NCBI GenBank assembly: GCA_002104905.1
Contig: MCFE01000168.1
Span: 1 to 64,000, forward strand
DNA from: Basidiobolus meristosporus CBS 931.73
Lineage: Eukaryota; Fungi; Basidiobolomycota
Reading direction: 5' to 3'
Length of the DNA stretch: 64,000 nt
Below, in pieces: positions 44,754-64,000 of this stretch. The notes beneath the pieces are model-generated. The model ran no database searches. It was not told where the DNA came from and worked only from the letters and a program-made list of their open reading frames with translations. Position numbers and translations under genes: made by a program. Each line of letters begins with the position of its first letter. The first letter of the stretch is position 1.

Positions 44754-45852
44754 ATGCACACCAACAACCTATTAGATATTCAACTAGAGACCGATACATT
44801 AATATTCAATGGGTCCCCTTCTGACTCGGCAGGAGCATTGCTGAAGGGCAAAGTTATCTTGCGATTAAAGGAAGCCACGAAGCTGCGATCGCTAACACTA
44901 AATCTCAAGGGAAGGGCCAAAACTACATGGACTGAATGTAAGTTTCTTTATGATCTGTTCGTTGCCGTATCAAAAGCTTACATAATTCCCAGCATACGGA
45001 ACAAAAGCATTTGCCAACTACGCCAAGAGAAAGCTGGTCGATCACAGCTGGATCCTACTTGAACCCAAAAAAGAAGGATACCAGTTTATGGCCGGAGAGT
45101 ATACGTACATGTTTGAGTATGTTTTCTCCGGTTCCTTACCAGAGACCATCCATATTGACAGCGGAAAAGTCGAATACAAACTTCAAGCTTCTGCTGAAAG
45201 GAGCTTTCTTCAAAGAAATTTGTCCACTGAAAAAGAGATTATCATCAAGCGGTACACTAATTGCCAGAGCAATGAATCAACCGATCTTGTCGGCATCTGG
45301 GAAGGCAAGGTTCGCTACGAAGTCCACGTGCCAGTGAAGTGCTTTGGCCTCGGGGAGTCTGTCCCGATCAGCATCAATGTAGCCTCTTTGGTAGAGCAGG
45401 CCCACATCAAGAGGGTTGTTTGTTTTCTGAAAGAGTCTATTACCAATCGCATACCGGAAATCAACAAGTTCAACGTCGATCACAATTGGTTACGTCTTTG
45501 TTCAGAAAAGCTCACCCCAACCAGTCACCTTGAGACTACACTCCAGCTGCAGATCCCAAATAATTCCAAGTCTGTGCACATCGACTATCGCTCGGAGCTG
45601 ATTCGAATTCGACACATCCTCCAGGTCAAGATTGAGGTGGAGAAGGCGAATCTTGTCGATTATGTGATTCTTGATTTGCCGATATATATTCTTCCCGCGG
45701 CTCATGATGACTTCTTTCAGGATTTGCCTTCATATTCTCCTCAATACCTCGAGCACTTCGCTCTTGATGAATATGAAAATAGCCCTCCACCATACCCAGC
45801 TCAAGATACCTTCACAAATTCTGTTAGATACAACGTTCAGTGCTCTCGTTAA
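44754..45852 (+). CDS. Alpha-arrestin (ART-type Rsp5 adaptor), one intron
   Basis: LIFNGSPSDSAGALLKGKVILRL, AGEYTYMFEYVFSGSLPETI, GKVEYKLQA, IRIRHILQVKI; C-terminal PY motifs LPSY and PPPY. Confidence 0.88.
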
Positions 45853-46016: not shown

Positions 46017-49000
46017 CTAGTAGCCAGAGTCGTTATCATCGGTTTCGTCACTGTTTGCATACGCCGATTTGGCAGGAGCATATTTGTCGAGTGTCAAGAG
46101 TTTGTCGTCGATGTCGTCAGAAAGATCGTTAACATCCGAGTCATATGAATATTTCTTGGAGCTGTTAATTACTCGTTTGAAGTCGTCATTTCCGGGATAC
46201 CAGTAGTCATCATGGTAGTCGTATCCATCATGTAAATCATTATAGGATCTACTGTTACCGTAAGTGTTGCCATACCAATTGCTATCATGACCGGAATATG
46301 AGTTGCCATTGAAGTAGTCACCAGAGTCCTGCCCGTTCCAGGACTTTCGCCTTTGCAATGTGCGAGTGTTCTTGCCACGGTAGCCAGAATACATCTCGTA
46401 TCCATCCATATTTGATCCTACCAATATCTCTTTCTGGTTGAACACACCTTTAAGGTCTAGAATGGCCTTATCACATTGTATTATTGACTCTCTAATGGAT
46501 GCAAGCTCTTTTGCGAATCTTCGCGAGTCAGTAGCACCTAGTAGCTCCAGTCGTCTAACGGATTCGTTCAGGCTAGGAATCACGTTCAATAGGAACGCCA
46601 CCTTTGTACGTTGCTCTTCATTTAGCGAGAGTAGTTTGGCTGTACCCTCTGCTTGGATTTCGGCAAGTCGGACCATGATCTGGTCAAGGTGTACCACGCG
46701 CTGTCTCAAGTCCTTGAAATCATTGGAGTGATTGGGGAAGATCAGATCAGGTCTGGTGACGATCTTTTCCAAGACTTTAGTGATTTGATTTAGCCTGGAC
46801 TTGATTTCCCTGTTCTCCCTGGACTGCTGGCGTGAAGCCAGTTCAAATCGGTTGATGAGTGAATTGGCGTCGGTTCCGGCAATTCGCTGCAGTGCAAATC
46901 CAATTTGATCCAGACGATCATCCATGTGCTTGAAGCCTTGATCATTTTGCTTAGAAAGTTCGGTAAATCCTCTTTCGATTAACGAAGTCTGCTCAGTGCT
47001 TAAGCGTCTCGTCAGTTGAGCCAGGTCATTGATGAACCCAGAGACACGCGAGATTGCACCAACAATCTTTTCGTTACTAAGTGTTTGGCGTTTTATATGG
47101 GTCAGGATGATGTCTTGCTCCTGAACGAGATGTGTCATTAAGCTACCCAGTTGGTTGATGCGTTGTTCAAAGTGGGTGATGATTTCTTGGTCATACTGCT
47201 TCGTCTCCACTCGCAACTGGTTGATCTCTCTGTGGAGCAAGGTTTGGTGTTGGCTGATGATATTGGTGACTGCTTCCTTCAGTTGTCCCAAGCGACCATT
47301 CATCTCAGAGAATTCGGCGTGATCGTGTTGCTTAGTGTAGACAAGCAGTTGCTGTTGCTGGGACACGAGCTTTGCAATAACTCCGTTTAAGTTTTCAAGC
47401 GCACCACCCATTTTGTTGATGGCCATGGACTGCTTTTCGACTATACCTGCCAGGCGCATTACGGCATGTTGTTGGTTGATAAGCTGTTTTAGCGCATTCC
47501 CGAACAAGTTCAGCTTTTGATCCAGCTTGGCGAATTGTTCGCGCTGCTCATTTCGACTCAACGTGAACAACTTTCTCTGTTCGTTTAGCAAAAATTCAAC
47601 CACCTCTTCAATTCTCAAAACCTTCGAGCCCAACGCTGCGATCTCTTGACTGTGCTTATTGGAGTTCTGGGTTTCCACTGTCAAGAGTTGGTTTTGTTGG
47701 CGTGTGAGCTGACTCACTAATCTTGCAATTTCCGAGAGTTTGACATTCATATCTTTGGAGAGGACATGTTGCTGTTGATTCAAGGAGCCTAGGCCTTCAC
47801 TTGTGGACTTGAATAGTAACGCATGCTGCTCGATCAATCTGTTGGTTGCGTCGCTAAGATGTGCCAATCTGGCCTTAACCTGGTTCATATCTTGAGGTAA
47901 TCCCAGCAATGTAGAAACCTTTGCATCGATGTTTCGAGTTTCCTTAACCAAAAATTGGACCGCATCATCCAAGTGAATCAGGTTGTTATTCAACTTTTCG
48001 ACACCGCTGAATGTTGCTTTTGTGATTTCTGTATTTTCTTTCTCGATGGCAATAAGGCTTCTTTGCTCCTCAAACAGGCGATCCACCACTTGAGCTAGTC
48101 GTGTTAGCTTCTCGGTAAGGAATCGGGTCGAATCAACGATTTTCTCATCTAGACGGTTTCCTTGTTTTACCAACAGCTCGCTAAATGCTTGCTGTTTTTG
48201 TACAACAAACTGGATACCTTTCTCCAAATCGACCAGGCGGGACAATACTGCATCGATTTGCGCACGAGAGTAGCCGGATTTTTCAAGTTTCTGTAGAATA
48301 GCACCCAAGAGGGAGCGTTGCTGGCTTATCAGAGAGTCAACACTCTTACGAAGATGCTCAACTCTAGTGTCAACGCCGTGAATAGCACCAGATTGCTGAC
48401 GTAAAATTGCAAGTAGCTCCTCACGATTTAGGAGGTTGTCTTGTTTTTGGGCAATATATTTTGCGATGTCATAGAGGTCTGCAGAGCGTTGAGAGATCAG
48501 GTTCAGTCTTTCCAAAATCTGCTTACTGGGGAACTCTTGATGCCCATGGCCCAGAATCTCCTTTTGAATTTCAAATAGTCTTCCGATTCCAGAGTTCATG
48601 ATATCGAATTGTCTATTCAACGACATAATCTGCCCCAGTAACGCTTTCGGAGCCTTTGTCACTACAGTTTCTGACAGTAAAGTGGTCTGCTTCGAAATAA
48701 GTTGACGGACATTACGACTAAACACGTTGAAACCATCGATAATTTGCTTGCTGATGTCGGTGCCAACGCCATACACTTTTTCCACCATTTGTGTAATAGC
48801 GTCCTGTTGGCGGAGCAATACATCAAGTCTTTCATTCACGCCAGACAAATTATGCTTGATGGGTCCCAAATCCCTTAGTCTCTCGGCGATTACTTTCAGA
48901 ACTTGCTCGTCGCGCAGAATATTCTTTTGCTGCTCGAAAATGGCGCGCACCAATCCATGTAAAGCCTGCAGCTGCTGGTTTAGGCCATTGACACTCTTCC

Positions 49001-52000
49001 CAAAGTTGACATTTAGCTGCCCTTGGCTTTGGAGAATCATATTTTGCTCTTTTTGTATACGCTTCATATCATCTCCTAAACCAGAAACGCGACCGCCAAC
49101 CGCTCGGATTGCTTCATAGAGGTTTCTGGCCACGGCATTCAATAGTTCCGGTCGTACAAGGTCTTTCTGCTGCTCTATCAATACTTGTAGCATCTTGTGG
49201 AGATCGCCCAATGTTCCAAAAATCTTTCTGTCATCAAGATTGTTTTCCCGTACAAATCTCTGGAACTCTTTGGTGGTGACCAAAGTTCGCTGATTTTCCA
49301 AGATATGCCCAACCAGCTCGCCCATCTGTGATAATCGACCATCAACCCTTTGGAATTCGCCGTAGAATTTCTCAAGGATTGGCCCGACCTTCTCGTTATG
49401 TAGGATGGCTTGTTGAAGCTCCAAAATATGTCGAACAGATCCGCTTAGTTGATTGAATCTCTCGGATATGATTTGGACATTCTTGGCCAAATCTCCGGTG
49501 ATCTCGTTGTTTTTACTCTGACTATTGAGGAGGACTGCTTGTAGTTTTCTTATTTCTCTAACAGCCTCGGTCAAACCTCGAACTTGTCCGTTCAGAACCT
49601 CGATGTCTTGGACGACGCGTTTGGGGAATTGATTGACCAGTTGAGAATTGGCGAGTAGCTGTTGTTGCTTGAAAAGTTGGTCCACCACACTAGTAAGGTA
49701 CCTGATGTTACCTCCGATTTTTTCTAAGTTTGCGGCTTCGCCTTGATGAATTCCATAGCCTTGTTCCAGCAACTTTTGCTGCTGGTTGATCAACAGGGAG
49801 ATTTCCTTGCGAACTGTGTTGATGTCTAATCCCAGACCTCTTATCTGCTTTGACTGATTACTCAGCAAAGCTACTACCCGATCATCATGGATCAACCTTG
49901 TCTGGACACTTGCGATCTCTTGAAGTGCATTACCAAACTTGCCAATACGTTCGTTAAGAATATTCAACATTTGGCGAACTGATGAGTATTCCTTGTCCTG
50001 TTTCTCAGCAATCGCACGTTGTTGTTGGCTAAGGTCTCCAACATCACCAGTCAATCGAATGATTTTTCCTGAAAGGTCACGAACTATATCAGCCAAGGCA
50101 CGAGGTAGCGAGCCAATTATCTCCGGAAGATTGAGCGACTGTTGCCAATGCAATACACTTGCAACCACGTTTTGGAGCTGCTTAACCCGGTTCAGGATTT
50201 CGCTTAGACCTTTTCTATCGACATCTTCCAAGGTTAGCAATCTCTCAAGTAGTCTAGATTGCTTGGAAAGGAATTCGGTGGTGCGAGCGGCAAAGTTCGC
50301 TAAACGGCCATTGATGTTCTGAATATAACTTAGCTGTTGATCGAGTGCGGCCTTGACTTCTTTGTTTTGGGAAATGATAATATTCTGCTCTTCCCGAATT
50401 TGCCTGACCTCCTTTAGAAGTTCAACAATTCCATGGGATACATCACTGACGCCTTCCCGAATTACGGTGGTTTCCCGTTTTTCAGCTGAAGTCAATTTGA
50501 GCAGTGATTCCTGGCGATTGACCAATACAGAAATGGCTGGCTCGAACTTCTCCAGGCGAGCATTGATTCTATGCACTTGTGAGAGGATTTCTTTGGGAAT
50601 TATTTTGTAAATATCAGAGTTCAACACAATTTGTTGAATATTTACTATTCCTTCAGACAGCTCTTTCAGTTCCGCTAGTCTCTTGATGACATCAGTGTCT
50701 CTAGCTTGAGATCCTTCATTCCCATTCTGAGTCTCACGCAGCAAAGTGTTCTGAATCTCTACAATGCGAACGATGCCATCTCTGAATCGTGCAAGTTGTT
50801 GCTTGATCAATTGAATGTCGCCAGTTTGCACTTTCAAGATCTCCATCACTTCTTCCTTGTGAAGCAGAGCATTCTGTTCCTCCGCAATGCGCTTGACCCA
50901 TTCGGCTACTTGGGCAAATTGACTACGTATTTGGGCCAATTGGCGTTCAACTTGCTTGTAATTTCCTCCTTCGCTTAGAACCTTGAGGATTAGAGATTGT
51001 CCGTCTCGTACATTTCGAATAGTAGTTCCAAGTTGAACCATACGATCGTTTAGATTGGCAATGATCTTGAAAATTTCTTTCCCAACTCTTGAGGCGATTT
51101 CTGGACCTGCAAGGCTCTTCTGTGAATCAACCAAGTGCCTTACAACATCACGCAGCGATCCGAGTTCTTGCGCAATTGCCCGATCACGTTTAGTATCCTC
51201 TGCAGAAACTTCGCCAAGCTGTTTTATGATCAATCCTTGTTCATTGACCATTCTGTTGAATTGATTTCCCAGTTCATTGAGCTGCACCCCAAGGCTGGCA
51301 ATGCGTTGATTCTGTACCTTGAGTAAAGCAGTAATCTCTCTGGTATTCAACACCTTTGTTTGTTCCGCAAAGGTTCGTCGAATAAATTCAAACAGCCCTA
51401 GTAAACGCTTGTTCAATTCTGAAACCTCCTCCTCCAAGTGATGACCTGTTGCATTGCTATCCTGGGATAATTGGAAGAGTGCGTTTTGCTTTGTTGTAAT
51501 CTGGTTGATGATTTCGATCAGCTGGGCATATTTATCATTGAGCATTTCTATCTTGCCAAGAGTAGACTCGGATAATTTGCCAGTTAGTGATGCTGAAACC
51601 AATTTTCTCTGCTGTTCAATTAGCTGAACAATCAAGTTCTGGAGTCCGCTTAGCCCTTGAAGAATACTTCTAGTTTCCTTAGAATCTACCCCGTTTTCTC
51701 CGGTAACTTTTTTCAATAGATCAAATTGAATACGCACAAGGGTCTCTATCTTCTTGTCGAGTCTTCGCACCTGCTCATTCAAAAGGTCCGTTTTCCCCAA
51801 GTTCTGTTTGAGAAGTTCAGTGTTGTGGAGTAGTATTGCTTTTTGCTCAGCATGAAGCTCCTTGACATAAGACCCAAGTTCACCTAGCCTTGCCCCTAGT
51901 TTATCGATACTGTTGATAATTAACCCAGTATCCTCCTTGGATTGAGCAAATAGTTTCTCCTGTAGCTCTTGGACCTGATTAACATCCTTATTCAAGCCGA

Positions 52001-55000
52001 TTAGTTTGTTATTGAGTCGCACTATTTCAGCCGGAATCCTTTTTCCCAACGCTTCGTTGAAGTTTCGTGAGAGGATATTAGTCTGTTGACTTGTCAGCTC
52101 GTAAATTGTTTTGCGTAATTCCGCTAGGTTTTGAGCGATTTCTCCTAATTTGCCGTAGTCTATTCTCCCGTCTTTGGAAAATACAGCAATGAGTTTCTGT
52201 TGCTGTCCAACCAAGGATTCTACTTTACGGTCTAATACGTGCAGCCCAGCTTTGATCTCTTCAAGATTCTTGGCCTGTTCAGGTGTAAGGCCGCCGCGTT
52301 TGAGGATCTCCAGTTGGAACTGTGCAACTTTCTCAACCATCTGGGACAACCCCGAAAGACCCTTCTTTACCTCATCTATATCTTTGACAATATACTTAGT
52401 ATCGCCATCCTGCTGCTGAATGAGATGGTCTTGCTTTTTGGAGATTTGGACAACCGCTTGGCCCAATTGCTTAAGTTGCAAGTGCAAGGCCTCAATATCT
52501 TTCAAAAGTTCCTTCGGTGCCTTGTCCCATCCGCTTTGAAGCAGGATATTCTGCTGTACTAGCACCTTCCGGATACTCTCACTAATCTTGGTTAGCACAT
52601 CTCTCAGAATGTTCAACTCTCCGCTATCCCCTTTCCCCTGGCCCAAGAGGTACTTCTGCTGGTTGAGGAGTTGGACGATGTGATTGCTGATTTCCGCTAA
52701 TTCCAAAGATAGGTTCTTGATATCGCCACCTTGTTTCTTGAAAAGAGCAGCGATCTCTTCACGAGTTACCAAGTGTCTTTGGGTTCCAATTACCTGGGTA
52801 ACCATATCGTAAAGTTTGTTCATTTGGTCGCCAAATACTCGAAGTTCTTTACCATGATTCCTTATCATGGCACTATTCTCTTGTGTAAAGCCTAGTAGTT
52901 TGTTTTGTTGATCCAGTAAGCCTCGGACATATTTTGTTAGTTGGTTCATTCCGTCATCAAGTTTCGAGAGCTCTGCTACTATCTCCTTAGAACCAACTCC
53001 CTTATTTTCGGAAATATGGTAAACAAGCTTGCGTTGTTCATTTATCATAAGCTCAATTGACTTTCTTAATTCCGATAGTTTAGCTCCCGAAATGCCAAAG
53101 AGTTTTTCGACATCGCTGCCATATTTCTCCAAAATCTCTCTTTGCTGAGCTGTCAACTGGTTTATATCCTTTCCAAGCGTGTTCAAGCGCTGGTTGACAA
53201 TATTGAAATTTCTGTCCTGGGATCGTGAGAGCTGCACCGTTAGTTTCAATAAAGAGTCCTGCTTTTTTGAAACTTCCAGAGTTGCTGTGGCCAGCCTTTC
53301 TATCTTGACGTCAATTTGTTTTGTATCACTAGCAATGTTTTTTGTAGTCTCGCCGATCTGAGAAAGTGCGGACTTCACTTCCATAAGAACAGTTTGGGTG
53401 GCTTCAGTTAATAGGCCAATTCTCTTGCTCATCTCTCGGATGCCTTCGATCCCCTTAATAGAGGTGCCACTTTGAAGGTAACGAAGGATTTCTTTTTGGC
53501 TATTAAACATTTTCTCGATGTCTCCATAGATTTTTGATAATCTTTGGGCGGTACCCTTCGCGTATTCCAAGGTTTCTTTGTCGGTGATGGAATTCTCTTT
53601 CTCAAGAGATGTCAATTCTTGGAGAAGCTTTCTCAAATTACCCATTTGACGGTTTATCCTTTTGATATCGGCTGCTTCTTCTTGAATTATTGGAGCAAGC
53701 TCTACCAGTTTGAGGGTGTAGCTCTGTTGCGTATTCAAGATCCTCACAATCTCATCGAGTTTTTCAAGCCTATTGAGAAATTTCCCCAGAGCCATATTTG
53801 TATTGCCCTTGTTTGAAACGCTTAAGAGAGCAATTTGATCCGAAGCTAGTCTCTTGACAAGAGCAGTTAGTTGATCTACTCTTTCTGCCAGCTTCTCTTC
53901 ATTCTCAAGAACTTTCTGTGAAGTACTCTCTTTGGCAACAACTTCAAGTAGTTTCCCTTGGCCGGAATAAAGCGAACTGATTGCTTGTTGGATATTGCTG
54001 AGTCGTTCGCCAAGTTTCAATAAATCGCCTTGGGAGGAGTTTTCAGCATTTTTGAGCGATTTTTCCTGGAGCTCTATCATTTGTGTCGTTTTTTCTCTCA
54101 GAACGCTCAGCTGCTCGTTTAGTTTCTTGATATCTCCTGAGTAGCTCGGCCCGTTGTAATTTCCATTAGACAAACGTCTCTGTTCCTTGAGCACAAGGGC
54201 TATGACATCGCTCAGCTGTGAAAGTTTGCCGTTAATCTTTTTGATATCTTGAGATTGGCCATTTTCGTTCATCAGAATCTGTTGCTGGTCAACTGCAACT
54301 TTCTCTATGATCTGGAGAATCTTCGAGGTCAGCTCCTCGAGTCTATCGACATCTCTATCATACTTCCCTTCATCATTTTTTGGATAGGTACGTCGTTCCT
54401 TGGAGATGCTTTGGATTGATTTACCTAGTCTATCAAGTATACCCCGGAGACTGCTGAATTCCTCACTTTGCTCCTTACTGAGTCGTGAAAAGATAGATTC
54501 CTGTTGCTGGAGTACGAGATCAACTCTTTCACGAAGCTTGGCGAGTCTACTATCCAGACCACCTAGGTTCCATTTCGCAGAGCCCGCGTCAATATTCACT
54601 GGCTTGCCATCAAGCAAATATTTCTGTTGCTTGGCAATCAGTTCTACAACTTCCACCAGCTGCTTCACTCGTGAGTTGAGACCGTTGATAGACTCAGTGA
54701 CACTTTCATCTGTAGAATGTTGATCCTTTCCGGAGCCATATCGCTTTATCAACTCTCTTTGCTCCTTAATCAGTCGGTCCACAATGTTGCTAATATCGGC
54801 GAGTCGGTAATTGATGCTTCCAATATCCTTTGTCAGTTCCTTCGGGATGGTAGCTGTTCGATATTGTTTAAGTAGAGTCTGCTGAGACTCAACCAGCGTC
54901 TGGATTATGGCTCGAAGCCTATCTAATGAGCTCGCTACTTTCCCATTCCCATCTTTAGGATAGTCGTCTCCTGCCTTCATATCCTTGTAATTGAACACCT

Positions 55001-57023
55001 TGGCTTGCTCCTCAATCAGGTAGTTGATTCTCTTTCCAAGATCATCCAATTTACCATCCATTTTCGTAATTAAAGTATATTGTTGCTGAAGCCAGGAATT
55101 GTGTTCTGAAAGTGGCGACAAAAGTTTGTCAAACTTGATCAGCTTTTCATTGAATGCTGACCATTTTTCTTCTCCATATGGCGCTTTCGACTTGATCAAT
55201 GCTGCTTGTTCTTTAAACAGACTCTGGACCACGCTCTTAAGAGTCATAATCGCTCGTGTCATGCCCTTGACATCTCGAAGGAATTCAACTGGTACACCAC
55301 TAGAGTGGTGACCTTCTAAAATCTTTTGTTGGCCATCTACAAGACCTTCACATTTGTCTTCAATACGATGGAGTAGATCAACGATCTCGGTTGACCCCGA
55401 ACTTTCGTTTTTCTCGCTGGAAGTCTCCTTGACATACCCGACTTGTTGTGATACGATCTTGTTGATCGATTCTCTGAGCAACTTGAATTCAGAAAAGATG
55501 GCCTGAATGTTCTTGCCATCCAAGTAGTGATTTCCACCTGAACCTTGCTCACTGGTTAGGGTTGTCTCTCTCTGGACCAAGGAGGCCAGTGAAGAGTTGA
55601 CCTCATTCAGCCGGAGACCAAGACCATTAATATCCTGGAAAATACGCTTGTTGACTTCAGTTTTGGCGGAACCATCATTGCGGATCCCTTCAGCGACAGT
55701 ATTCAGAGTTTCAACCAGTTGACCAATTCTTTCAGAAAGAGCCTTGAAGTTGATGCTTTGATTTTCTCTAACCTCCGATATAAGCTGGATCTCTTTCCTT
55801 TCAGCCGCACGAGATTGCTGGATACTGCCCTGTAGGAGTTGCTTAACCTGATCAAGTTCTTCTTTCAGGCGAACGATACTCGTGTTGTCTTCTTTGGATA
55901 GTTTTGAGACCTTACTAACAACATCGCTAACCTCCCTTGTAATAAGGTTAAGTCCTGATTGTAGCCCACTAAGGTTGTGGCGTATCTCCTTAAGCTCATG
56001 GTCATGTGCAGTATCGCTTTTCTCCGAATTAGTGTACCCGGAATCAATTTTATATGATCCTTCTTTACCAAGTTGGCCGACTGCACGAAGCAGCTCGGTC
56101 AGTCTAGTGTTGATCTCGGCAACATCTTTGGATGATTTTACGATAGCAATACGTTGTTCCTGAGTATTTTGCTGCTGAACGTCCGAAAGCTCAGAAACAT
56201 CACGTCTAAGCTGTTGTAGCTTGTCGTTTAATGCGCCCACTTCGTTGAAGGTCTTGGTGCTAATCGAATATGTCTTTGAAGTCTGCTCTTCAATGACTTT
56301 GTTTTGTTCAGAGATCCCACCCACCGTGCGAATAAGCTCCTCCACCTTTCCAGATAATACCGATAATTCCTTATTCGATCCGCCACCAAAGTTATAACGC
56401 TCTTTAGTGATCCCCTTGTGTCCTACGGCCGCTTCCTGAATTAAACGATCTAATTTTTCTTCAAGCCTGCTGAGGTCCCAACCAGAAGATTGGTCCTGCT
56501 TATGGAATGACAATCCCTTGCCAGCATTTCGTTCATCGATCTCCACTTCATTATCATATTCGAAATCTTCCACCAAGCTGCCGATGCCATAACCACCCTC
56601 ATACCAATCCTGAATTCCTCCTAGGAATCTCAATTGATTATCGGGAAACAGAATAATTTGCTCTTCTGGAACCTCCGTGAGATACACCTCCTCTATCACG
56701 TTGATTGGTTGTGGCGCAATAAGTCTGATGGAGTCACTATTTTGGAACACTCTGGTAACTCCATGCGCTCCTTTTTCTAGAGACTCTTCAGCATCTTCCT
56801 CAGATTCCTCCTGTTCTTTCACCGAAAGAATACTACTGTTGCCGTCATTCTTCTTTCTCAGGTATACTGAAGAGTCGTCACCACCGCCAGTATGCTTTGA
56901 TAACTCTTCACCCAGTATAGTATTGCTCAGAGCGAGTTGGCTGAATAGAAACAAGGCTGTACGCCAGTTCTTACTGGCGTTAGAGTGACGGAATTGGCTA
57001 CGTAAAATAGTGTTGGATAGCAT
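46017..57023 (-). CDS. Giant intronless 3668-aa coiled-coil repeat protein, probably secreted; function unknown
   Basis: 11-kb open frame. Possible signal segment WRTALFLFSQLALSNTILG, acidic head, several dozen heptad blocks ending L/I-x-x-x-Q-x-x-L-L, Tyr/Asp/Gly-rich tail. Confidence 0.9.
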   Translation of the reverse strand: MLSNTILRSQFRHSNASKNWRTALFLFSQLALSNTILGEELSKHTGGGDDSSVYLRKKNDGNSSILSVKEQEESEEDAEESLEKGAHGVTRVFQNSDSIRLIAPQPINVIEEVYLTEVPEEQIILFPDNQLRFLGGIQDWYEGGYGIGSLVEDFEYDNEVEIDERNAGKGLSFHKQDQSSGWDLSRLEEKLDRLIQEAAVGHKGITKERYNFGGGSNKELSVLSGKVEELIRTVGGISEQNKVIEEQTSKTYSISTKTFNEVGALNDKLQQLRRDVSELSDVQQQNTQEQRIAIVKSSKDVAEINTRLTELLRAVGQLGKEGSYKIDSGYTNSEKSDTAHDHELKEIRHNLSGLQSGLNLITREVSDVVSKVSKLSKEDNTSIVRLKEELDQVKQLLQGSIQQSRAAERKEIQLISEVRENQSINFKALSERIGQLVETLNTVAEGIRNDGSAKTEVNKRIFQDINGLGLRLNEVNSSLASLVQRETTLTSEQGSGGNHYLDGKNIQAIFSEFKLLRESINKIVSQQVGYVKETSSEKNESSGSTEIVDLLHRIEDKCEGLVDGQQKILEGHHSSGVPVEFLRDVKGMTRAIMTLKSVVQSLFKEQAALIKSKAPYGEEKWSAFNEKLIKFDKLLSPLSEHNSWLQQQYTLITKMDGKLDDLGKRINYLIEEQAKVFNYKDMKAGDDYPKDGNGKVASSLDRLRAIIQTLVESQQTLLKQYRTATIPKELTKDIGSINYRLADISNIVDRLIKEQRELIKRYGSGKDQHSTDESVTESINGLNSRVKQLVEVVELIAKQQKYLLDGKPVNIDAGSAKWNLGGLDSRLAKLRERVDLVLQQQESIFSRLSKEQSEEFSSLRGILDRLGKSIQSISKERRTYPKNDEGKYDRDVDRLEELTSKILQIIEKVAVDQQQILMNENGQSQDIKKINGKLSQLSDVIALVLKEQRRLSNGNYNGPSYSGDIKKLNEQLSVLREKTTQMIELQEKSLKNAENSSQGDLLKLGERLSNIQQAISSLYSGQGKLLEVVAKESTSQKVLENEEKLAERVDQLTALVKRLASDQIALLSVSNKGNTNMALGKFLNRLEKLDEIVRILNTQQSYTLKLVELAPIIQEEAADIKRINRQMGNLRKLLQELTSLEKENSITDKETLEYAKGTAQRLSKIYGDIEKMFNSQKEILRYLQSGTSIKGIEGIREMSKRIGLLTEATQTVLMEVKSALSQIGETTKNIASDTKQIDVKIERLATATLEVSKKQDSLLKLTVQLSRSQDRNFNIVNQRLNTLGKDINQLTAQQREILEKYGSDVEKLFGISGAKLSELRKSIELMINEQRKLVYHISENKGVGSKEIVAELSKLDDGMNQLTKYVRGLLDQQNKLLGFTQENSAMIRNHGKELRVFGDQMNKLYDMVTQVIGTQRHLVTREEIAALFKKQGGDIKNLSLELAEISNHIVQLLNQQKYLLGQGKGDSGELNILRDVLTKISESIRKVLVQQNILLQSGWDKAPKELLKDIEALHLQLKQLGQAVVQISKKQDHLIQQQDGDTKYIVKDIDEVKKGLSGLSQMVEKVAQFQLEILKRGGLTPEQAKNLEEIKAGLHVLDRKVESLVGQQQKLIAVFSKDGRIDYGKLGEIAQNLAELRKTIYELTSQQTNILSRNFNEALGKRIPAEIVRLNNKLIGLNKDVNQVQELQEKLFAQSKEDTGLIINSIDKLGARLGELGSYVKELHAEQKAILLHNTELLKQNLGKTDLLNEQVRRLDKKIETLVRIQFDLLKKVTGENGVDSKETRSILQGLSGLQNLIVQLIEQQRKLVSASLTGKLSESTLGKIEMLNDKYAQLIEIINQITTKQNALFQLSQDSNATGHHLEEEVSELNKRLLGLFEFIRRTFAEQTKVLNTREITALLKVQNQRIASLGVQLNELGNQFNRMVNEQGLIIKQLGEVSAEDTKRDRAIAQELGSLRDVVRHLVDSQKSLAGPEIASRVGKEIFKIIANLNDRMVQLGTTIRNVRDGQSLILKVLSEGGNYKQVERQLAQIRSQFAQVAEWVKRIAEEQNALLHKEEVMEILKVQTGDIQLIKQQLARFRDGIVRIVEIQNTLLRETQNGNEGSQARDTDVIKRLAELKELSEGIVNIQQIVLNSDIYKIIPKEILSQVHRINARLEKFEPAISVLVNRQESLLKLTSAEKRETTVIREGVSDVSHGIVELLKEVRQIREEQNIIISQNKEVKAALDQQLSYIQNINGRLANFAARTTEFLSKQSRLLERLLTLEDVDRKGLSEILNRVKQLQNVVASVLHWQQSLNLPEIIGSLPRALADIVRDLSGKIIRLTGDVGDLSQQQRAIAEKQDKEYSSVRQMLNILNERIGKFGNALQEIASVQTRLIHDDRVVALLSNQSKQIRGLGLDINTVRKEISLLINQQQKLLEQGYGIHQGEAANLEKIGGNIRYLTSVVDQLFKQQQLLANSQLVNQFPKRVVQDIEVLNGQVRGLTEAVREIRKLQAVLLNSQSKNNEITGDLAKNVQIISERFNQLSGSVRHILELQQAILHNEKVGPILEKFYGEFQRVDGRLSQMGELVGHILENQRTLVTTKEFQRFVRENNLDDRKIFGTLGDLHKMLQVLIEQQKDLVRPELLNAVARNLYEAIRAVGGRVSGLGDDMKRIQKEQNMILQSQGQLNVNFGKSVNGLNQQLQALHGLVRAIFEQQKNILRDEQVLKVIAERLRDLGPIKHNLSGVNERLDVLLRQQDAITQMVEKVYGVGTDISKQIIDGFNVFSRNVRQLISKQTTLLSETVVTKAPKALLGQIMSLNRQFDIMNSGIGRLFEIQKEILGHGHQEFPSKQILERLNLISQRSADLYDIAKYIAQKQDNLLNREELLAILRQQSGAIHGVDTRVEHLRKSVDSLISQQRSLLGAILQKLEKSGYSRAQIDAVLSRLVDLEKGIQFVVQKQQAFSELLVKQGNRLDEKIVDSTRFLTEKLTRLAQVVDRLFEEQRSLIAIEKENTEITKATFSGVEKLNNNLIHLDDAVQFLVKETRNIDAKVSTLLGLPQDMNQVKARLAHLSDATNRLIEQHALLFKSTSEGLGSLNQQQHVLSKDMNVKLSEIARLVSQLTRQQNQLLTVETQNSNKHSQEIAALGSKVLRIEEVVEFLLNEQRKLFTLSRNEQREQFAKLDQKLNLFGNALKQLINQQHAVMRLAGIVEKQSMAINKMGGALENLNGVIAKLVSQQQQLLVYTKQHDHAEFSEMNGRLGQLKEAVTNIISQHQTLLHREINQLRVETKQYDQEIITHFEQRINQLGSLMTHLVQEQDIILTHIKRQTLSNEKIVGAISRVSGFINDLAQLTRRLSTEQTSLIERGFTELSKQNDQGFKHMDDRLDQIGFALQRIAGTDANSLINRFELASRQQSRENREIKSRLNQITKVLEKIVTRPDLIFPNHSNDFKDLRQRVVHLDQIMVRLAEIQAEGTAKLLSLNEEQRTKVAFLLNVIPSLNESVRRLELLGATDSRRFAKELASIRESIIQCDKAILDLKGVFNQKEILVGSNMDGYEMYSGYRGKNTRTLQRRKSWNGQDSGDYFNGNSYSGHDSNWYGNTYGNSRSYNDLHDGYDYHDDYWYPGNDDFKRVINSSKKYSYDSDVNDLSDDIDDKLLTLDKYAPAKSAYANSDETDDNDSGY

Positions 57024-57283
57024 TACAACGAGCGAGGTTACAAGAATGTGTCAAGAAAAACCGAAATTACTTTCAAGGTCTATTAAAAAAAGGAATGCTA
57101 CGATAATTAAGAATAGTCGGCAAAAGCAAAGGACTCGGAAGTTAAGTTCAAAATTGGTGGGTCCTAGAAGTAAGGTTTTCTCTATACCACCTTAGTAGAA
57201 AAGTATGTTTTAATATAACCCCAAGAGTGACGAAGAAAATTTCTACGCTTGTATGATAGCTAGCTGTGTCTCCCGAGCGAGGC

Positions 57284-57291
57284 TATTTATA
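57284..57291 (-). promoter_or_regulatory. TATA box (TATAAATA on minus strand) for the 3668-aa gene
   Basis: tatttata on the plus strand, ~260 bp upstream of the ATG at 57023. Confidence 0.45.
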
Positions 57292-57962
57292 CCACATGTA
57301 CAACATTTATTCCCTAAGGATATAGCAATCCTCACAAGGAACATGAAACTTGACAGCCAGGATTTCCTCTAACGTGACGAAGATCCACGGTGTTGAATTC
57401 AACTGTTTTTGAAGTACCATCCGGCCTCGATTGTTTCAGATAATTCGGCGAGAACATATGATGTATTAGCATAGATCTTAGAGCCCACCGATTTCAATGA
57501 ATTCCAAACCAAGTGGCCTGTGGATGCTGTGATATCGATTGGTAATGCGGTGGTCTTGTTGCCTGGTTATTGATGTTAAATTGGACGCACAACCACACTA
57601 TTGTCGGGATGAAATGATCCTAAAGTAAACGATATCTTCATCTTTTGCTAATGTGTGTAAAGCAGCCATCTTCCTTGTTTCAAGGACGAAATGTTTAGAC
57701 GTATGTAACCTTATGTACAAAGGGATCAGAATTGTCTTACACATGCACTTGCGGTTTCTGGATTGTTTTCTAGTAGATATCCATAAGCATTCAACCAGAA
57801 TTAAAGCTGGCACATTGATTGCAGGTGCATATATATATGCCATTCATCGTTGCTGCTATTTTGGTTTCTCTTTAAAAACACTCAGATGGTCCACTGTTCA
57901 TCTATCCTGCAGTGAGATGCTGAATAAACACTGTTACTCTATCAACATGAGCAACTGCATTT

Positions 57963-57969
57963 TATAAAT
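57963..57969 (+). promoter_or_regulatory. TATA-like element (TATAAAT) for the paralogous giant gene
   Basis: About 110 bp upstream of the ATG at 58078. Confidence 0.45.
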
Positions 57970-58077
57970 GCGAGTAGTCATGTGTTGATCCATTAAACCT
58001 TTAATCGCGATATCTATTTGTGTATCCATTTCTATCTTCTCAGGATATTCCACACTGTTTACGTTCGGCTAGTAATT

Positions 58078-61000
58078 ATGACCCATCAAAATGGGATGAA
58101 TACTTTCAAGAGACTGCGTTGCAATTTTTACTTACTATCGCAGTTAGCTGTGGTACAATCCATTCAAGGCTCCATATACCATCACCCGACTAACAATTCA
58201 TTCGTGTCTAATGAATTCGCGCTTCATACAAACTCGAGTAATAGAGCTAACTTGTTAAGCAATATACACCTACGAAGTCAAACACGCTCTACAGATCCCC
58301 TTGACAATTGGAATACTGTCAATTTAGGGCTGGACCCATCGGGTATCGAGCTCTCACCCTATTTAGAGTCTGGGGACTATCCACTATCAGAATATGTTCA
58401 GGCGTTCTCTTGGAAAAATCCAGGCGAGCAGGTCCTACTCTTTCCGGACGGTCAACTGAGATATGTGAAATCAGCTCTACATCCCTACTCTTCTGTTGAG
58501 TCGGATAAGACGAACGTTAGGACTAGCTTGCCAAAAGATCACGGAGCGAACAAAGATGATGGGATTGCCACAAAAGAAGAATCTCTAATGTTGGATGTGA
58601 AATTGGATCAACTCATCCTGGCTTTGTCACCAGCTTTACTACACGAAAGACACCATTCCGGCATTCATTTTCAAGGGTTGCATGAAGATATAACCCAACT
58701 GAAACAAAACGTAGAGAAGCTGGAGAATGCAATCGGGATAACATCGACATCAAATCAATCGAATCAAGCCCATACTCAACTTTATGAGAAACTGAATGGC
58801 CGTAACCATAACTTCGTCGGCGCTCAAAATAATACCGATAGTCTTGAGCAGCTTCGAGATGCGTTCAGCGACATGATAATGGAGCAACAAATTTTACCTA
58901 GGGGGATAGGCGACGTTACGCCAACTGAGCTTAAGAAGATAATCGAAGACTTAACAAGTCTGTTCTCTCGTACTCACAGAATATTAGTAGAGATTGGCAA
59001 TGAAAAAGATATATTCCTTCGCAAAGACTACTCAGAAATGAAAAATTTTCAAGGAATTAACAAGCTGTCGAAACTGAAGGATATATTGGACCTGATAATG
59101 AAACTACGGGACCGCATCTTGGGGGAAGATTTTCATCAAAAACTCAGGAATTACTCGGGAGATATTAGTAAGCTTGGGGAGCAATTTATTAAATTGAAAT
59201 CTACCATGGATCTATTGGTATTGCAGCAACAATGGACATCAAAAGGAGTGAGGGCCAGCCAGCTGACTAATGATCAAGCTACTAAGCAATTAGATGAATT
59301 GTATATGGTGGCTGATCGAATAATGCAGGATCAAGAGAAGCTATTTTCCATCAAAACCAGTGGCAAGGAAGATTTAGTACTGGAAAAAGCTATTCATAAT
59401 TCTCTTAAACAGTTTGCAAAACTGACCATCGTGGTTGAGAGATTAATTGAACCGAGTGGACTTGTAAAACCCCACGGAGATCCCGGAAGTGCTAAGGTTG
59501 TTGAGAGTAGATTAACAATCATTACTCCGAAGCTTGATCTACTGAGAGATGCCATGATACAGATGAATAAGCAGCAAAATATCCTCTTGGATATCTCTAG
59601 ATATCACCAACGGATGGAATCGCAATCCCAAGATATTCGAAGACTTGAAGAACAATTGGATAGGATCCAATCAACTATGCTTGCCTTGGAGAAGAACGGA
59701 CCTCAACACCAACGAGCAAAGTTTGTTAAGGCTCATCTAGAGCAATTTAATAATCTCTTTCAAAAGGCACAACGGCTGGTGAGAGGACAATATCAGTTAC
59801 TATCACTTGTGAAATCCAATAGGTCTGAAAAACGCTTGAATAATGTCGAAACCATGAATCTGAAGCTCTATCTGCTGAACAAAATTATCGAGCAAGTCAT
59901 CAGCAATGAAAGGCCTTTGGTAAATTCAGTTAACTCTAAAGGCAGGAACATGGCGAGCAGGATTTTACAGGTCGATATCAAGATTGGCAAGCTTAATACA
60001 GCAGCTATAGAAATATCTAGACGTCAAGAGCAACTATCGGAATCTCTCAACGTCTCTTGGGGAGAACAAGATAACAACTTCAAGCTTATGAGCTATATAC
60101 TGAATAATCTGGGTTCAGGCATCAATAGATTAGTCACACAACAGCAACGACTTCTCAACGATAAGGGGTATACAAATGAACCAGCAATTAACGGAAAATT
60201 GTTGGAACTGGAGAAATCTGTGAATCGTTTGGTTGATGCACAAAGCAAATTGCTCCTTATCAAGCCAGCCAAACTCTCAGGAGAATTGATGCAAGAAATT
60301 GATTCAATGGGCGAACGTGTCAAAGAGCTCGCCAAACTCATTGAAGATTTGAATTCAAAACAAGAACAAGTTTGGAAGATCTTTAGGAATGGGAATGCAG
60401 TAAATGATTTTGAGAAGGCCCTCGCAAAGGACTTGCATAATCAATTTTTATCGCTTTCTTTTCTTGTTGATAAGTTGACTCAGAAGCAAATAGCATTTAC
60501 CACTCGAGAGGAGGTGACAAGACTTCTGAGTGTCCAAGATAAAGGAATCCAGCAACTATCGTTCGATCTTGGTCAAATTTGCAATAAGGTGGGCCAAATT
60601 TTGCGGCAACAAGAAATTCTAAATGCCAAGAATAATAGATCAAGTTCCTTGAAATTATTGTTGGATATTAGTAAGAATATCTGGCAGCTTCTGAAACAAC
60701 AAAATCTACTAGCCCGGTCCGCACATGAGAAGGATGTAGACAAGCACGCATCAAACTTGCGAAAGAAATTGGACAACCTCAAGATAATTATCAGTAAAGT
60801 ACTTTCGAGCCAAGAAAGTTTCATCCAGCCAGCATTCGCCGGCAGCGAAACTTCTTCTGTTACAAGTACTAGGGTAGGGGAGCTCGAATTGGAATTGACT
60901 GAACTAAACAATGGGCTTGATATTGCTTCCTTTGTGCAGATAGAAATTCTCAAGCAGATTGGTGTTCTCAACGATCAGCAAAACGTCAAAAGCATAAACT

Positions 61001-64000
61001 CAAAAACCTCCACTTTAGGGAAGCGAGTTGATCAGCTAGTCAAAGAGCAAAAGGCACTCATCGATAAAGAGGGCCGCAATGATAAGGTGGCTAAAGACTT
61101 CGAGGAAATTCGGAAGGTTATTTCCAAAATAGTTGAACAACAAGCTACAACTTTAAACGCTACCTGGAGGAGTATATTTGAGGAAAGAATACCATTCGAT
61201 GTATCCGTGGTCAACACCAGGATTGTAAAGCTAGGTGACATTGTAGATCAACTCCTAGTCAAGCAACGTACTCTCTTTCCCCACCATGCAAACAGTGGCT
61301 TGCACAAGAACTCAGTCAAAGGGTTGAGAAGTCTAACAATCTCAATCAGCCAGGTTGGCAAATATGCTAAGAAATTATTATCTGAGCAAACACAGATATA
61401 CCAGAATCATGAAGTCTTGAGACAATCCCTCACCAATACCAGTAAGATCGACAGCCAGCTAATCGGATTAACCAAGAAAATCGACACAGTTGTACGCATC
61501 CAAGCTGCTCTATTACGACGTGCTCGAAAATATAACTATAGGAATACTGAAAGGCTTGGTGACGATCCTATTATCCAAAAACTCTGTGGCTTACAAAGTT
61601 CTGTCAACCAAATTATTTTACGTCAACAGAAATTGACCAGGGCCAAATTAGACGGACGCATTCCAGATGAAACTCTCAAAGAATTTGGGAAACTTGACAC
61701 GCATTTCAAGGAGCTGATAGGCTCAGTGAACCAATTTTCCACCAAGCAGTGGACAGTTATTTTGAAGGACTCGAAAAGCGAATTAACTGAAGACTTGGTG
61801 AGGAATATTTACCGCCTTTCTGAAGAACTCAAAGATATTTCGAACTATGCAACGGAAACCATGAAAATTCAGTCGAGGATTTTTGGCAGTAAGGAAGTCA
61901 CCAGAATACTCCAGCTCCAATCCAGTCAAGTAAAGGACTCTGGTTTAAAGTTAGGCCAGCTAAAGTCAAAATTTCAGGATCTATTAAAGCAACAGGCAAT
62001 GGTGATCAAGGAGTTAGGATACAGCCCAGGTCTAAAGAAAAATTCAAACGATCGCTTGCAAATTATTTATGAAAAGCTTCATGGACTACGTGGCGATTTT
62101 GAAAAGGTTATTGGATATCAAAGAAGTTTTATTAACCTCAAGATTAGATACAACCTGCCGAAGGAGATATCTTTTATAGTTGAAAAATTGAATGAACGTT
62201 TTACGGCTCTAGAAAAACAAATCGTTGACTTATCTAGGGGTCAGGATAACTTCTTGAGACTTGAAAGGAAAGATGAGCAACATCTATACACCATTGAAAA
62301 TTTCGCCTCGAACACAACCAAGGAGATTGGATCCTTGAAGGAATTGATAAACCAAATTATCCTCGAGCAATCAAAACTCTTCAAGCGTAGTGATGTTACG
62401 GCCCTTCTACAGCAACACACAGCAAGTATCGAGAAGATGGATGATCGACTACAGGATCTCAGCGCTCGAGTGATTCAACTTGTCAGTAATCAAAAGGAAC
62501 TGCTGCTTGCTGGTGAAACAGACAGATCTAAAAATTCTGCAAACAAAGACCTAATTAATAGATTTACCGAATTAAGAACAACAGTTCAAACACTTGTCCA
62601 CAAGCAGAATGAGTTATCTAAGCCACAGATTTTCAACCAAATCTCAGGGGATATAGCGCATGAAATTAAGGAGCTAACTGTGCAACTATCCAAACTCAAT
62701 GAAAAGGTCACCGCATTGAACGATAAGCAGCAAGCCATTCTTCTTCAAGTAGATAGCGCTGGTAAACACAATATCAATCCTCACAGACACAACGTTCAAT
62801 ATTTGAATGAACAACTAATTGATCTGGGAAAATCAATCCATGACATCTCCAGTCATCAAGCAAGAATTGCAAACGACCACCGAGTATTGGATGCGCTAAA
62901 GAAGCAAAATACGCAAATACTCTCTTTAGAAACAGGAATGATCAATCTCCGGGGAGAATTGAGGACTTTGATCTATCGTCAACAAACTCTGCTCAATGAA
63001 ACACACAACACTATCCAGCAGAATAGTGGTGAGATTTTAGAAATCCTGGCGAAACTCCAGAACTTGGACGGTAAAACAAATGGCCTATTCGAGCAGCAAA
63101 AAGCACTGATCAATAGAGATGTTTATGCAACTATTCCTAAAGAACTTACATTCCAGATTGATCAGATCGGTACTCGAATCGAGGATCTTCAGCATTTCGT
63201 GACCAAAGTTTCCAGAGACCAGGCAACATATCTTGAGTACAAGACAAGAAACAAGAATGGTGATTCGAAGAAATTACTTCGACTCAATCAACAATTTGAT
63301 CGATTGTTAACCATCATATCTCGGATTCTTGACGACCAAAATAAGATTACTACCAACGAGCATGTAGTCAAGATACTGAAAGAACACTCCAAATCAATCC
63401 AAAAAATTGATATCAGGCTCACGGGTATAAGCACTCTAATTCGAAAAATATTAGATAACCAACTCCGATTCATTCAATCACACAACGATCATAATCATAC
63501 TAGCCGTACTGCTCAGAATTTACCGCCTATAGCTACAGCCTTGTTGAGGATTCAAGAGGAGGTTGAATATCTCATTGAACAGCAGAGGAAGCTTAATCTT
63601 CCAGCAGTTGTGAATGTTCTACCTACAAATCTTCTGGACAAAGTGGTTCAAATCAACTCAGCTTTGGACGGCTGGAACGGGTATATTCAGCGTTTGTTTG
63701 AAAAGCAAGCCGAGTTGATCAAGTCATCAGAGAGCAGACAAGCCCAGGATTATAGGCATGCAATTGACAAGATCAACGAGAATTTGAGCGATTTTGGCCA
63801 CGCAATGCATACTCTGACTGTCCAACAGACGGAAATCTTCAAGAATGAGGAAATTCTAAAGATCGTGGCTGATGAACTCGGGGATCTGAAAGCAGTCAGA
63901 GCAACCATGAGAAAATTCGGCAGTCAGATCCAGAGTGTGATCAACCAACAAAAACACATCCTGGCTAGTATCTCTAATTTATCGAATCGGGATTCAGTTG
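58078..64000 (+). CDS. Paralog of the giant coiled-coil protein, at least 1974 aa, runs off the window end (absent from the ORF track)
   Basis: In-frame stop at 57994-57996, ATGs at 58078 and 58096. Stretches I translated (58.0-59.2 kb and parts of 60.5-64 kb) had no stops, and the track lists no closed ORF in this frame. Shares SQLA, EQVLLFPDGQLRY, KKIDTVVRIQ and NEEILKIVA with the minus-strand giant. Confidence 0.9.
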   Translation, partial: MTHQNGMNTFKRLRCNFYLLSQLAVVQSIQGSIYHHPTNNSFVSNEFALHTNSSNRANLLSNIHLRSQTRSTDPLDNWNTVNLGLDPSGIELSPYLESGDYPLSEYVQAFSWKNPGEQVLLFPDGQLRYVKSALHPYSSVESDKTNVRTSLPKDHGANKDDGIATKEESLMLDVKLDQLILALSPALLHERHHSGIHFQGLHEDITQLKQNVEKLENAIGITSTSNQSNQAHTQLYEKLNGRNHNFVGAQNNTDSLEQLRDAFSDMIMEQQILPRGIGDVTPTELKKIIEDLTSLFSRTHRILVEIGNEKDIFLRKDYSEMKNFQGINKLSKLKDILDLIMKLRDRILGEDFHQKLRNYSGDISKLGEQFIKLKSTMDLLVLQQQWTSKGVRASQLTNDQATKQLDELYMVADRIMQDQEKLFSIKTSGKEDLVLEKAIHNSLKQFAKLTIVVERLIEPSGLVKPHGDPGSAKVVESRLTIITPKLDLLRDAMIQMNKQQNILLDISRYHQRMESQSQDIRRLEEQLDRIQSTMLALEKNGPQHQRAKFVKAHLEQFNNLFQKAQRLVRGQYQLLSLVKSNRSEKRLNNVETMNLKLYLLNKIIEQVISNERPLVNSVNSKGRNMASRILQVDIKIGKLNTAAIEISRRQEQLSESLNVSWGEQDNNFKLMSYILNNLGSGINRLVTQQQRLLNDKGYTNEPAINGKLLELEKSVNRLVDAQSKLLLIKPAKLSGELMQEIDSMGERVKELAKLIEDLNSKQEQVWKIFRNGNAVNDFEKALAKDLHNQFLSLSFLVDKLTQKQIAFTTREEVTRLLSVQDKGIQQLSFDLGQICNKVGQILRQQEILNAKNNRSSSLKLLLDISKNIWQLLKQQNLLARSAHEKDVDKHASNLRKKLDNLKIIISKVLSSQESFIQPAFAGSETSSVTSTRVGELELELTELNNGLDIASFVQIEILKQIGVLNDQQNVKSINSKTSTLGKRVDQLVKEQKALIDKEGRNDKVAKDFEEIRKVISKIVEQQATTLNATWRSIFEERIPFDVSVVNTRIVKLGDIVDQLLVKQRTLFPHHANSGLHKNSVKGLRSLTISISQVGKYAKKLLSEQTQIYQNHEVLRQSLTNTSKIDSQLIGLTKKIDTVVRIQAALLRRARKYNYRNTERLGDDPIIQKLCGLQSSVNQIILRQQKLTRAKLDGRIPDETLKEFGKLDTHFKELIGSVNQFSTKQWTVILKDSKSELTEDLVRNIYRLSEELKDISNYATETMKIQSRIFGSKEVTRILQLQSSQVKDSGLKLGQLKSKFQDLLKQQAMVIKELGYSPGLKKNSNDRLQIIYEKLHGLRGDFEKVIGYQRSFINLKIRYNLPKEISFIVEKLNERFTALEKQIVDLSRGQDNFLRLERKDEQHLYTIENFASNTTKEIGSLKELINQIILEQSKLFKRSDVTALLQQHTASIEKMDDRLQDLSARVIQLVSNQKELLLAGETDRSKNSANKDLINRFTELRTTVQTLVHKQNELSKPQIFNQISGDIAHEIKELTVQLSKLNEKVTALNDKQQAILLQVDSAGKHNINPHRHNVQYLNEQLIDLGKSIHDISSHQARIANDHRVLDALKKQNTQILSLETGMINLRGELRTLIYRQQTLLNETHNTIQQNSGEILEILAKLQNLDGKTNGLFEQQKALINRDVYATIPKELTFQIDQIGTRIEDLQHFVTKVSRDQATYLEYKTRNKNGDSKKLLRLNQQFDRLLTIISRILDDQNKITTNEHVVKILKEHSKSIQKIDIRLTGISTLIRKILDNQLRFIQSHNDHNHTSRTAQNLPPIATALLRIQEEVEYLIEQQRKLNLPAVVNVLPTNLLDKVVQINSALDGWNGYIQRLFEKQAELIKSSESRQAQDYRHAIDKINENLSDFGHAMHTLTVQQTEIFKNEEILKIVADELGDLKAVRATMRKFGSQIQSVINQQKHILASISNLSNRDSV

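Follow-up and report, generated by a model that had tools for sequence, protein, structure and literature searches.

Giant proteins that consist of many tandem helical bundles have been described in several systems. The spectrin-repeat rods (spectrin, dystrophin, nesprins and plakins) are cytoplasmic proteins made of three-helix repeats of 106 amino acids (aa) (PF00435), and they carry CH, KASH or other end domains. The talin rod, vinculin and alpha-catenin are composed of consecutive four-helix bundles with helices of about 30 residues, and paired bundles of vinculin and alpha-catenin share a long central helix. Among bacterial proteins, Ebh of Staphylococcus aureus is an exported, Cys-poor and very long rod with dozens of tandem helical-bundle repeats, which are triple-helix bundles of 126 aa (FIVAR-GA). 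As for the arrangement of genes, the collagen IV genes COL4A1 and COL4A2 are placed head to head on very short, true bidirectional promoters, and their chains are proven partners in a heterotrimer. In this study, we analyzed a head-to-head pair of giant paralogous genes, hereafter gene A and gene B, in the first 64,000 nucleotides of contig MCFE01000168.1 of Basidiobolus meristosporus CBS 931.73 (hereafter the window, the coordinates of which are those of the contig record). The analysis focused on gene B, which is absent from the public annotation.

Gene B is located on the plus strand at 58078..64000 of the window and continues beyond it. Translation of the window showed that its frame runs from the ATG at 58078 to base 64000 over 1974 codons without a stop, as an initial annotation made from the window sequence had reported (at least 1974 aa). 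In the same contig past the window, the frame ends with a stop at 66462. The full-length product has 2794 aa, close to the length of about 2900 aa that had been predicted, and no stop or frameshift interrupts the 2794 codons within or past the window. The frame was missing from the list of open reading frames (ORFs) of the window because it runs off the window end. In the public annotation (GCA_002104905.1), the next gene after the 3668-aa gene is one for an enoyl-CoA hydratase at about 66.8 kb, with none called in between, and no protein identical to the gene B product was found among 5.8 billion database proteins. The region 56427-61500 is covered by an independent DNA contig (run X1) with zero differences; the DNA run behind this contig may derive from the window's own source sample. 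The GC content of gene B is 0.40, as compared with 0.44 in gene A. All of the features of the Basidiobolus A/B family described below were found in gene B, namely the modules, the N-terminal motif, the head, the tail and the divergent partner gene A at a distance of 1054 bp. As judged from its sequence, gene B is confirmed as a genuine protein-coding gene that was overlooked by the public annotation.

The A and B proteins share the same architecture. Autocorrelation of the sequences showed periods of 7, about 41 and about 162 residues, with a z value of 4-6 at lag 7, and a weak two-module periodicity of about 325 aa. A hidden Markov model (HMM) of the module, iterated on eight family proteins, covers 150 positions, and the modules are spaced by about 162 aa. 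In gene B, the tandem array of modules extends from residue 203 to the window end (58684..64000, plus strand), each module consisting of four helix-plus-loop units of about 41 aa. All modules of gene B match the family HMM; 15 of them are full modules (E values of 1e-12 to 1e-29), to which partial ones are added. The long A proteins have about 20-21 modules and the long B proteins about 19-20, and a short A copy at a second locus has 15.

The regions outside the array are also conserved. In all eight family members, a basic N-terminus is followed by a hydrophobic core of 10-14 residues containing SQLA. In gene B, the basic stretch and the moderately hydrophobic core with the motif L-x-SQLA-V/L (58078..58170, plus strand) form a putative signal peptide. 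The head motif LFPD-x-QLR, residues 121-128 of gene B (58438..58461, plus strand), is invariant across the A and B proteins. The tail is rich in Tyr, Gly and Asn and ends in a conserved motif of the type Y-W-Y-P-x-N-x-x-F, in which W2789 and Y2790 (gene B numbering) are invariant. The proteins, of about 2800-3700 residues, contain one to three Cys each, and NxS/T sequons are depleted in the A proteins. A precursor of Kex2-processed peptides was considered and rejected, since KR and RR pairs occur at or below expectation (KR: 6 vs 12 expected in B, 17 vs 17 in A).

Gene A occupies 46017..57023 on the minus strand as an unbroken ORF of 3668 codons with about 20-21 modules. The ORF was 100% identical to K493DRAFT_351315 of B. 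meristosporus CBS 931.73 over the part that was searched (residues 1400-2800), and comparison of the prefix and suffix of the full ORF with the public model showed an in-frame block of 23 aa as the sole difference. The K493DRAFT_351315 model excises a 69-nucleotide in-frame GT...AG 'intron' at 48149-48217 on the minus strand, which corresponds to residues 2936-2958 of the ORF (23 aa). This intron call may be spurious, because the excised piece holds the conserved helix motif of the module, including its Gln.

In agreement with the initial annotation, which regarded gene B as a colinear paralog of the 3668-aa protein, BLASTP aligned gene A with the window part of gene B at an E value of 8e-67 (23% identity over 1357 aa) and with full-length gene B at 25% identity over 2171 aa. 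The modules correspond one to one: A modules 1-12 pair with B modules 1-12, A14-19 with B13-18, and A21 with B19. Since A has one extra module, BLASTP offsets the A-B register by one module near A residue ~1753 and B residue ~1131. The three peptide pairs quoted in the initial annotation are all present, and two of them (A ~1753 with B ~1131) follow the true module correspondence. Each A module is closest to the B module of the same position, not to the neighboring modules of A itself. The array was therefore individualized before the A/B split. Conservation per block along the A and B rods is modestly correlated (Spearman 0.51, p 0.011), a value partly driven by the less conserved termini. 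This correlation fits a shared position-specific constraint and is not proof of contact.

The head-to-head layout was conserved and was found at four loci, two ancient loci in each of two species. At locus 1 of B. ranarum, about 1.3 kb separates K7432_000010 (A) from the divergently transcribed K7432_000011 (B). K7432_000011 (P0005; 3577 aa) is the ortholog of gene B, with 48% identity over 2562 aa. Locus 2 of B. meristosporus, on contig MCFE01000038.1, contains an A gene of 2727 aa (K493DRAFT_334011) and a B gene of 3566 aa (K493DRAFT_297118), both of which are annotated; the latter is 41% identical to gene B. Locus 2 of B. ranarum is fragmented. On the opposite strand, 1.8 kb upstream of its A gene, a B-type N-terminus is encoded, and a B fragment lies on another contig. 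Downstream of A, genes for arrestin, SQS_PSY, Complex1_LYR and HLH proteins follow at locus 1 in both species (window flank 45088-45852). At locus 2 of B. meristosporus, only arrestin and SQS_PSY lie inside the retrieved stretch, and none of the four flank genes is on the contig of B. ranarum locus 2. The shared flank synteny suggests that the genus underwent a whole-genome duplication or the duplication of a large segment. As a separate observation, the long B gene at locus 2 of B. meristosporus (L003, MCFE01000038.1, minus strand 1-8481) forms a continuous ORF that starts with the family N-terminal motif. The deposited protein (P0006) begins differently, which probably reflects wrong splicing at the 5' end of the gene model.

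A maximum-likelihood tree separated the A and B clades with support of 100/100. Gene B is the old, diverged and intact second paralog that the initial annotation had supposed. The tree paired each B. meristosporus locus with a B. ranarum locus, with support of 99/97 in the B clade and of 100/100 for locus 2 in the A clade. The A/B duplication is therefore older than the locus duplication, which is itself older than the species split. On the basis of the tree and the gene maps, the head-to-head layout is one that has outlived both the locus duplication and speciation.

The two genes of each B. meristosporus locus have evolved unequally. The terminal branch of gene B (B_mer1) measures 1.07 substitutions per site, the longest in the family, against 0.18 in its B. 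ranarum ortholog (B_ran1); that of the short A copy at locus 2 (A_mer2) measures 0.70 against 0.18 (A_ran2). Gene B, the fastest member of the family, has thus changed at about six times the rate of its ortholog, and its identity to the ortholog is 48%, as compared with 62% for gene A. In the alignment with the ortholog, residue 256 of gene B falls opposite residue 909, and B modules 1-4 are lacking. This in-frame deletion leaves the head, the tail and the module register intact. The A copy at locus 2 of B. meristosporus similarly lacks A modules 1-6. Each locus of this species consequently consists of one long conserved chain and one short fast chain, of opposite types at the two loci. B. meristosporus keeps exactly one long A and one long B, and no copy in B. 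ranarum has the N-proximal deletion. The retention of one long A and one long B per species argues that A and B are non-redundant with each other. In module counts, the short rods have 14.6 and 15.3 modules and the long rods 20.4 (A) and 19.5 (B). The matched lengths of the long and the short rods are suggestive, but this is a single case.

In the comparison of gene B with its ortholog, the proportion of nonsynonymous differences (pN) was 0.33 and that of synonymous differences (pS) 0.80. Since pS is saturated, it can only be stated that pN is lower than pS, and no ratio of nonsynonymous to synonymous rates is given. The 8.4-kb open frame is incompatible with long neutral decay, which suggests that gene B is a functional gene under weaker or changed constraint. 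In addition, contigs of run X6, labeled as the same species, match the 5' end of gene A and the adjoining spacer (55600-58031) at about 88% with several small indels. These contigs diverge past the spacer, and nothing at or above 85% was found over the first 3.4 kb of gene B. This pattern is consistent with B evolving faster or with the strain having a different structure.

The fold of the module was predicted with AlphaFold2. For residues 1271-1598 of gene B, which comprise two modules (61888..62871, plus strand), a 96-row module-pair alignment gave a predicted local distance difference test (pLDDT) score of 76 and a predicted template modeling (pTM) score of 0.50, with pLDDT up to about 90 in the first module. 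The model showed four helices per module, of 29-43 residues each, with loops of 5-10 residues between them, and a helix that passes the module boundary almost unbroken. The loops between the predicted helices are enriched in Pro and Gly, and a helix break occurs about every 41 residues. With VIA-align, the first modelled module was superposed on IncA with a Z score of 13.0 and a root-mean-square deviation (rmsd) of 3.4 over 155 of 161 residues, on Rx-CC with a Z score of 11.3 and an rmsd of 1.8, and on SPECT with a Z score of 11.5. In a profile search of PDB sequences, the best matches were designed single-chain antiparallel bundles. Foldseek searches of the PDB and AFDB clusters and a shape search of the Atlas gave template modeling (TM) scores that were all below 0.5 and no specific fold family. 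The weak Foldseek rows included talin, vinculin and alpha-catenin, with TM scores of about 0.2-0.26 and E values above 0.1. According to the model, the module probably folds as an intramolecular antiparallel four-helix bundle, and the rod would be a string of bundles, not a continuous coiled coil. The coiled-coil fibre of the initial annotation was not supported, because Pro/Gly-containing loops recur every ~41 residues and AlphaFold2 folds the module into such a bundle.

Several known folds were considered for the module and rejected. A classical long coiled coil, as in the myosin tail, golgins and the rods of intermediate filaments, shares the heptad signal, but the 29-43-residue helices of the A/B module are broken by loops. 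Neither A nor B matched any Pfam family at E values up to 0.1. This null result speaks against the spectrin repeat PF00435, as does the module itself, with four helices in about 162 aa in place of three in about 106. It likewise speaks against the vinculin/alpha-catenin/talin rod family, for which the Foldseek TM scores were about 0.26 or less at E values above 0.1. A SNARE-like buried Gln layer was also dropped, because the conserved Gln of each helix is placed about 8 residues from its C-terminal end and would alternate between the two ends of the bundle.

The start codons of genes A and B are separated by a spacer of 1054 bp (57024..58077). The initial annotation gave the same distance, described an outward-facing TATA on each side and proposed one bidirectional promoter. 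Both elements were found. The TATA-like element TATAAATAG (57285..57293, minus strand) faces gene A about 265 bp upstream of its ATG, and TATAAA (57964..57969, plus strand) faces gene B about 110 bp upstream of the ATG at 58078. Both were assigned from sequence only. The single promoter fared less well, since each side has its own TATA-like element, the two being about 675 bp apart, and the spacer is unlike its counterpart in B. ranarum: blastn showed no significant similarity between the orthologous spacers of locus 1. In a MAFFT alignment, a TATAAATAG-like element was present at the same place in both B. ranarum loci; except for this element, the apparent conserved blocks of the spacer were not significant. 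RNA families, tRNAs and DNA tandem repeats were searched for in 56500-64000, and none was found. At locus 2, the spacers of B. meristosporus and B. ranarum share two blocks of 49 and 93 bp near the B start, 84-88% identical, at L003:8669-8883 (contig MCFE01000038.1) and L004:2737-2940 (B. ranarum). These blocks could be a 5' untranslated region, a short exon or a regulatory element.

From these results, we favor with moderate confidence the reading that gene B is an intact, ancient B paralog encoding an exported rod or tether in which bundles are arranged as on a string. In this model, the A and B proteins each possess a signal-peptide-like N-terminus, the LFPD-x-QLR head, 15-21 modules of about 162 aa and the Tyr/Gly/Asn-rich tail. 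They would form a long, nearly Cys-free, exported rod or tether, the ends of which may serve to anchor or cross-link it. A and B would be non-redundant and probably co-regulated from the shared spacer. The duplicated pair has diverged reciprocally, into a long A and a short B at locus 1 and a long B and a short A at locus 2. The parts of this reading differ in strength. Export of the A and B proteins appears somewhat probable from their sequences. For the structural role as a rod or tether, the arguments for and against are evenly balanced, and co-regulation of A and B would likewise have an even chance of being correct.

It is worth considering other explanations of the same observations. One builds on the heteromer of the initial annotation: A and B might be obligate chains of a single fibre, produced in equal amounts under the control of a shared bidirectional promoter and paired in register. 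The layout, after all, was kept at four loci through locus duplication and speciation; the A and B modules are strictly colinear, the rods are similar in length (long, 20.4 vs 19.5 modules; short, 14.6 vs 15.3), and in each species both a long A and a long B survive in conserved form. The modest correlation of conservation between A and B would also agree with such a fibre, although it is partly due to the less conserved termini. The repeat alignment, however, backs intramolecular bundles, and the 41-residue loop spacing speaks against a long interchain coiled coil. Gene B is not a plain equal partner either, being the fastest-evolving member and four modules short, and the spacer DNA is not conserved. 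Moreover, because each B. meristosporus locus encodes one long and one short chain, length-matched partners lie at different loci, which is the opposite of what a promoter shared for the sake of stoichiometry would be expected to keep. We regard this fibre as unlikely. A variant, in which B. meristosporus makes long A1/B2 and short A2/B1 extracellular heteromeric rods from obligate length-matched partners after parallel in-frame losses, is the least probable of the explanations considered here. If true, it would represent a genus-specific structural system made from a new four-helix module.

Two further explanations concern the place and the state of the proteins. A and B might be intracellular giant tethers of the cytoskeleton or of organelles, in the manner of spectrin, nesprin or the talin rod, with the N-terminal motif serving as a membrane anchor or a targeting helix. 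Tandem helical-bundle rods of such size in eukaryotes are mostly intracellular. As a signal peptide, the N-terminal hydrophobic core would be weak; its sequence is conserved to an unusual degree for paralogs with 25% identity, and talin, vinculin and alpha-catenin are among the weak Foldseek rows. On the other hand, the order of a basic n-region, a hydrophobic core, a small residue and then acidic residues is the pattern of a signal peptide, one to three Cys per protein are unusual for large cytoplasmic proteins, and Pfam detected no actin-binding, KASH or other cytoskeletal domain. In language-model space, the N-terminal 200 residues are nearest to small secreted acidic proteins (score 0.65), which is a lead and not evidence. 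An intracellular location is possible, but we consider it doubtful. Alternatively, gene B could be a redundant duplicate under relaxed constraint, silent or being lost, with K493DRAFT_297118 as the working B. Its longest branch in the family (1.07), its lower identity to the ortholog (48% vs 62% for A), the loss of four modules, the lower HMM scores of its N-proximal modules (35-61 bits vs 57-101), its lower GC content (0.40 vs 0.44), its missing annotation and the related strain that matches the 5' end of A at ~88% and nothing of the first 3.4 kb of B at 85% or more would all be in line with this. An 8.4-kb frame without any stop or frameshift, an in-frame deletion that preserves head, tail and register, a pN well below pS and significant module matches throughout are difficult to reconcile with it; constraint could only have been lost very recently. 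Such a redundant state of gene B is very unlikely.

Several facts nevertheless weigh against the exported bundle-on-a-string rod that we favor. Gene B is unannotated, and it is covered by contigs of DNA runs. Relaxed constraint could be the reason for its shortening and its sixfold acceleration. A basic n-region and a core of 10-14 residues are present in 8 of 8 members, as read from the sequences, but the hydrophobicity of the core is moderate (Kyte-Doolittle 1.6-1.8 over 11 residues), which weakens the case for export. With regard to the fold, a first AlphaFold2 run on 501 aa with a 17-row alignment gave a pLDDT of 58.6, too poor to use. The later model is a monomer with a pTM of 0.50, and its second module and the junction between the modules are of lower confidence. 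A Z score of about 13 is within reach of unrelated helical bundles, so the fold call concerns the arrangement of helices and not homology. Finally, the even number of helices per module and the near-continuous junction helix of the model seem to fit no settled geometry of a straight rod.

As far as it was searched, the A/B family appears to be restricted to the genus Basidiobolus. When 1199 residues of the B rod were used as a phmmer query against 1.84 billion representative proteins, five matches were obtained, all from Basidiobolus: P0001, P0003 and P0006, named B. meristosporus, P0004 from B. ranarum, and P0007 on a B. ranarum assembly contig. A scan of bacterial and archaeal genomes for relatives, which tested horizontal transfer with low sensitivity, found none. 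A profile search with six proteins returned only two known members; it is limited by its word prefilter and is uninformative on distant relatives. The ESM Atlas feature search reached at most 0.81 with a rod segment and 0.65 with the N-terminus and yielded no usable relative. A literature search found no paper mentioning the A/B proteins.

The present analysis adds a missing 8.4-kb gene to the gene set of B. meristosporus and defines a family of giant proteins whose building block is a 162-residue helical module not described before. The unannotated gene B, the phylogeny of the four loci, the module-level correspondence and the reciprocal shortening are new here. The reciprocal shortening provides a clean natural experiment in the retention and divergence of a paralog pair and speaks against the two types being interchangeable. 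Should the proteins be exported as rods or tethers, they may be relevant to structures specific to Basidiobolus, among them the cell wall, the adhesive capilliconidia or the gut stages. For protein engineering, the module could be of interest as a four-helix repeat that occurs naturally in a single chain. Elsewhere in the window, ORFs of 216, 211, 168, 221 and 240 aa are located at 9029-13536.

Compared with the described systems, the A/B proteins resemble the spectrin-repeat rods in that they are giant proteins with many diverged, position-individualized tandem helical-bundle modules and heptads, and in that a helix of the model appears to continue from module to module. The module differs from the spectrin repeat in its length of about 162 aa, its four helices and its lack of a Pfam match, and the signal-peptide-like N-terminus and the Tyr-rich tail of A/B differ from the ends of the cytoplasmic spectrin-type proteins. 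Consecutive four-helix bundles with helices of about 30 residues are shared with the talin rod, vinculin and alpha-catenin. A weak two-module period of about 325 aa is also seen in A/B, and the model suggests paired bundles that share a long central helix, as in vinculin and alpha-catenin. In contrast to these proteins, with which they have no sequence similarity, A and B lack FERM, vinculin-binding and actin-binding parts.

A Cys-poor, very long rod of tandem helical bundles is likewise found in Ebh, the export of which has a putative counterpart in A/B. The A/B module has four helices in 162 aa, and neither sequence nor Pfam similarity to Ebh, nor any bacterial relative, was found. The head-to-head collagen IV pairs provide an analogy of layout only: paralogous genes for long chains stand back to back, and the layout survives duplication of the whole pair. 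The A/B spacers, however, are 1.0-1.8 kb long and not conserved in sequence, and the partnership of A and B is hypothetical. Within Basidiobolus, the sister locus on MCFE01000038.1 has the same family, layout and flanks as the locus analyzed here; the short chain is an annotated A in the former and the unannotated gene B in the latter.

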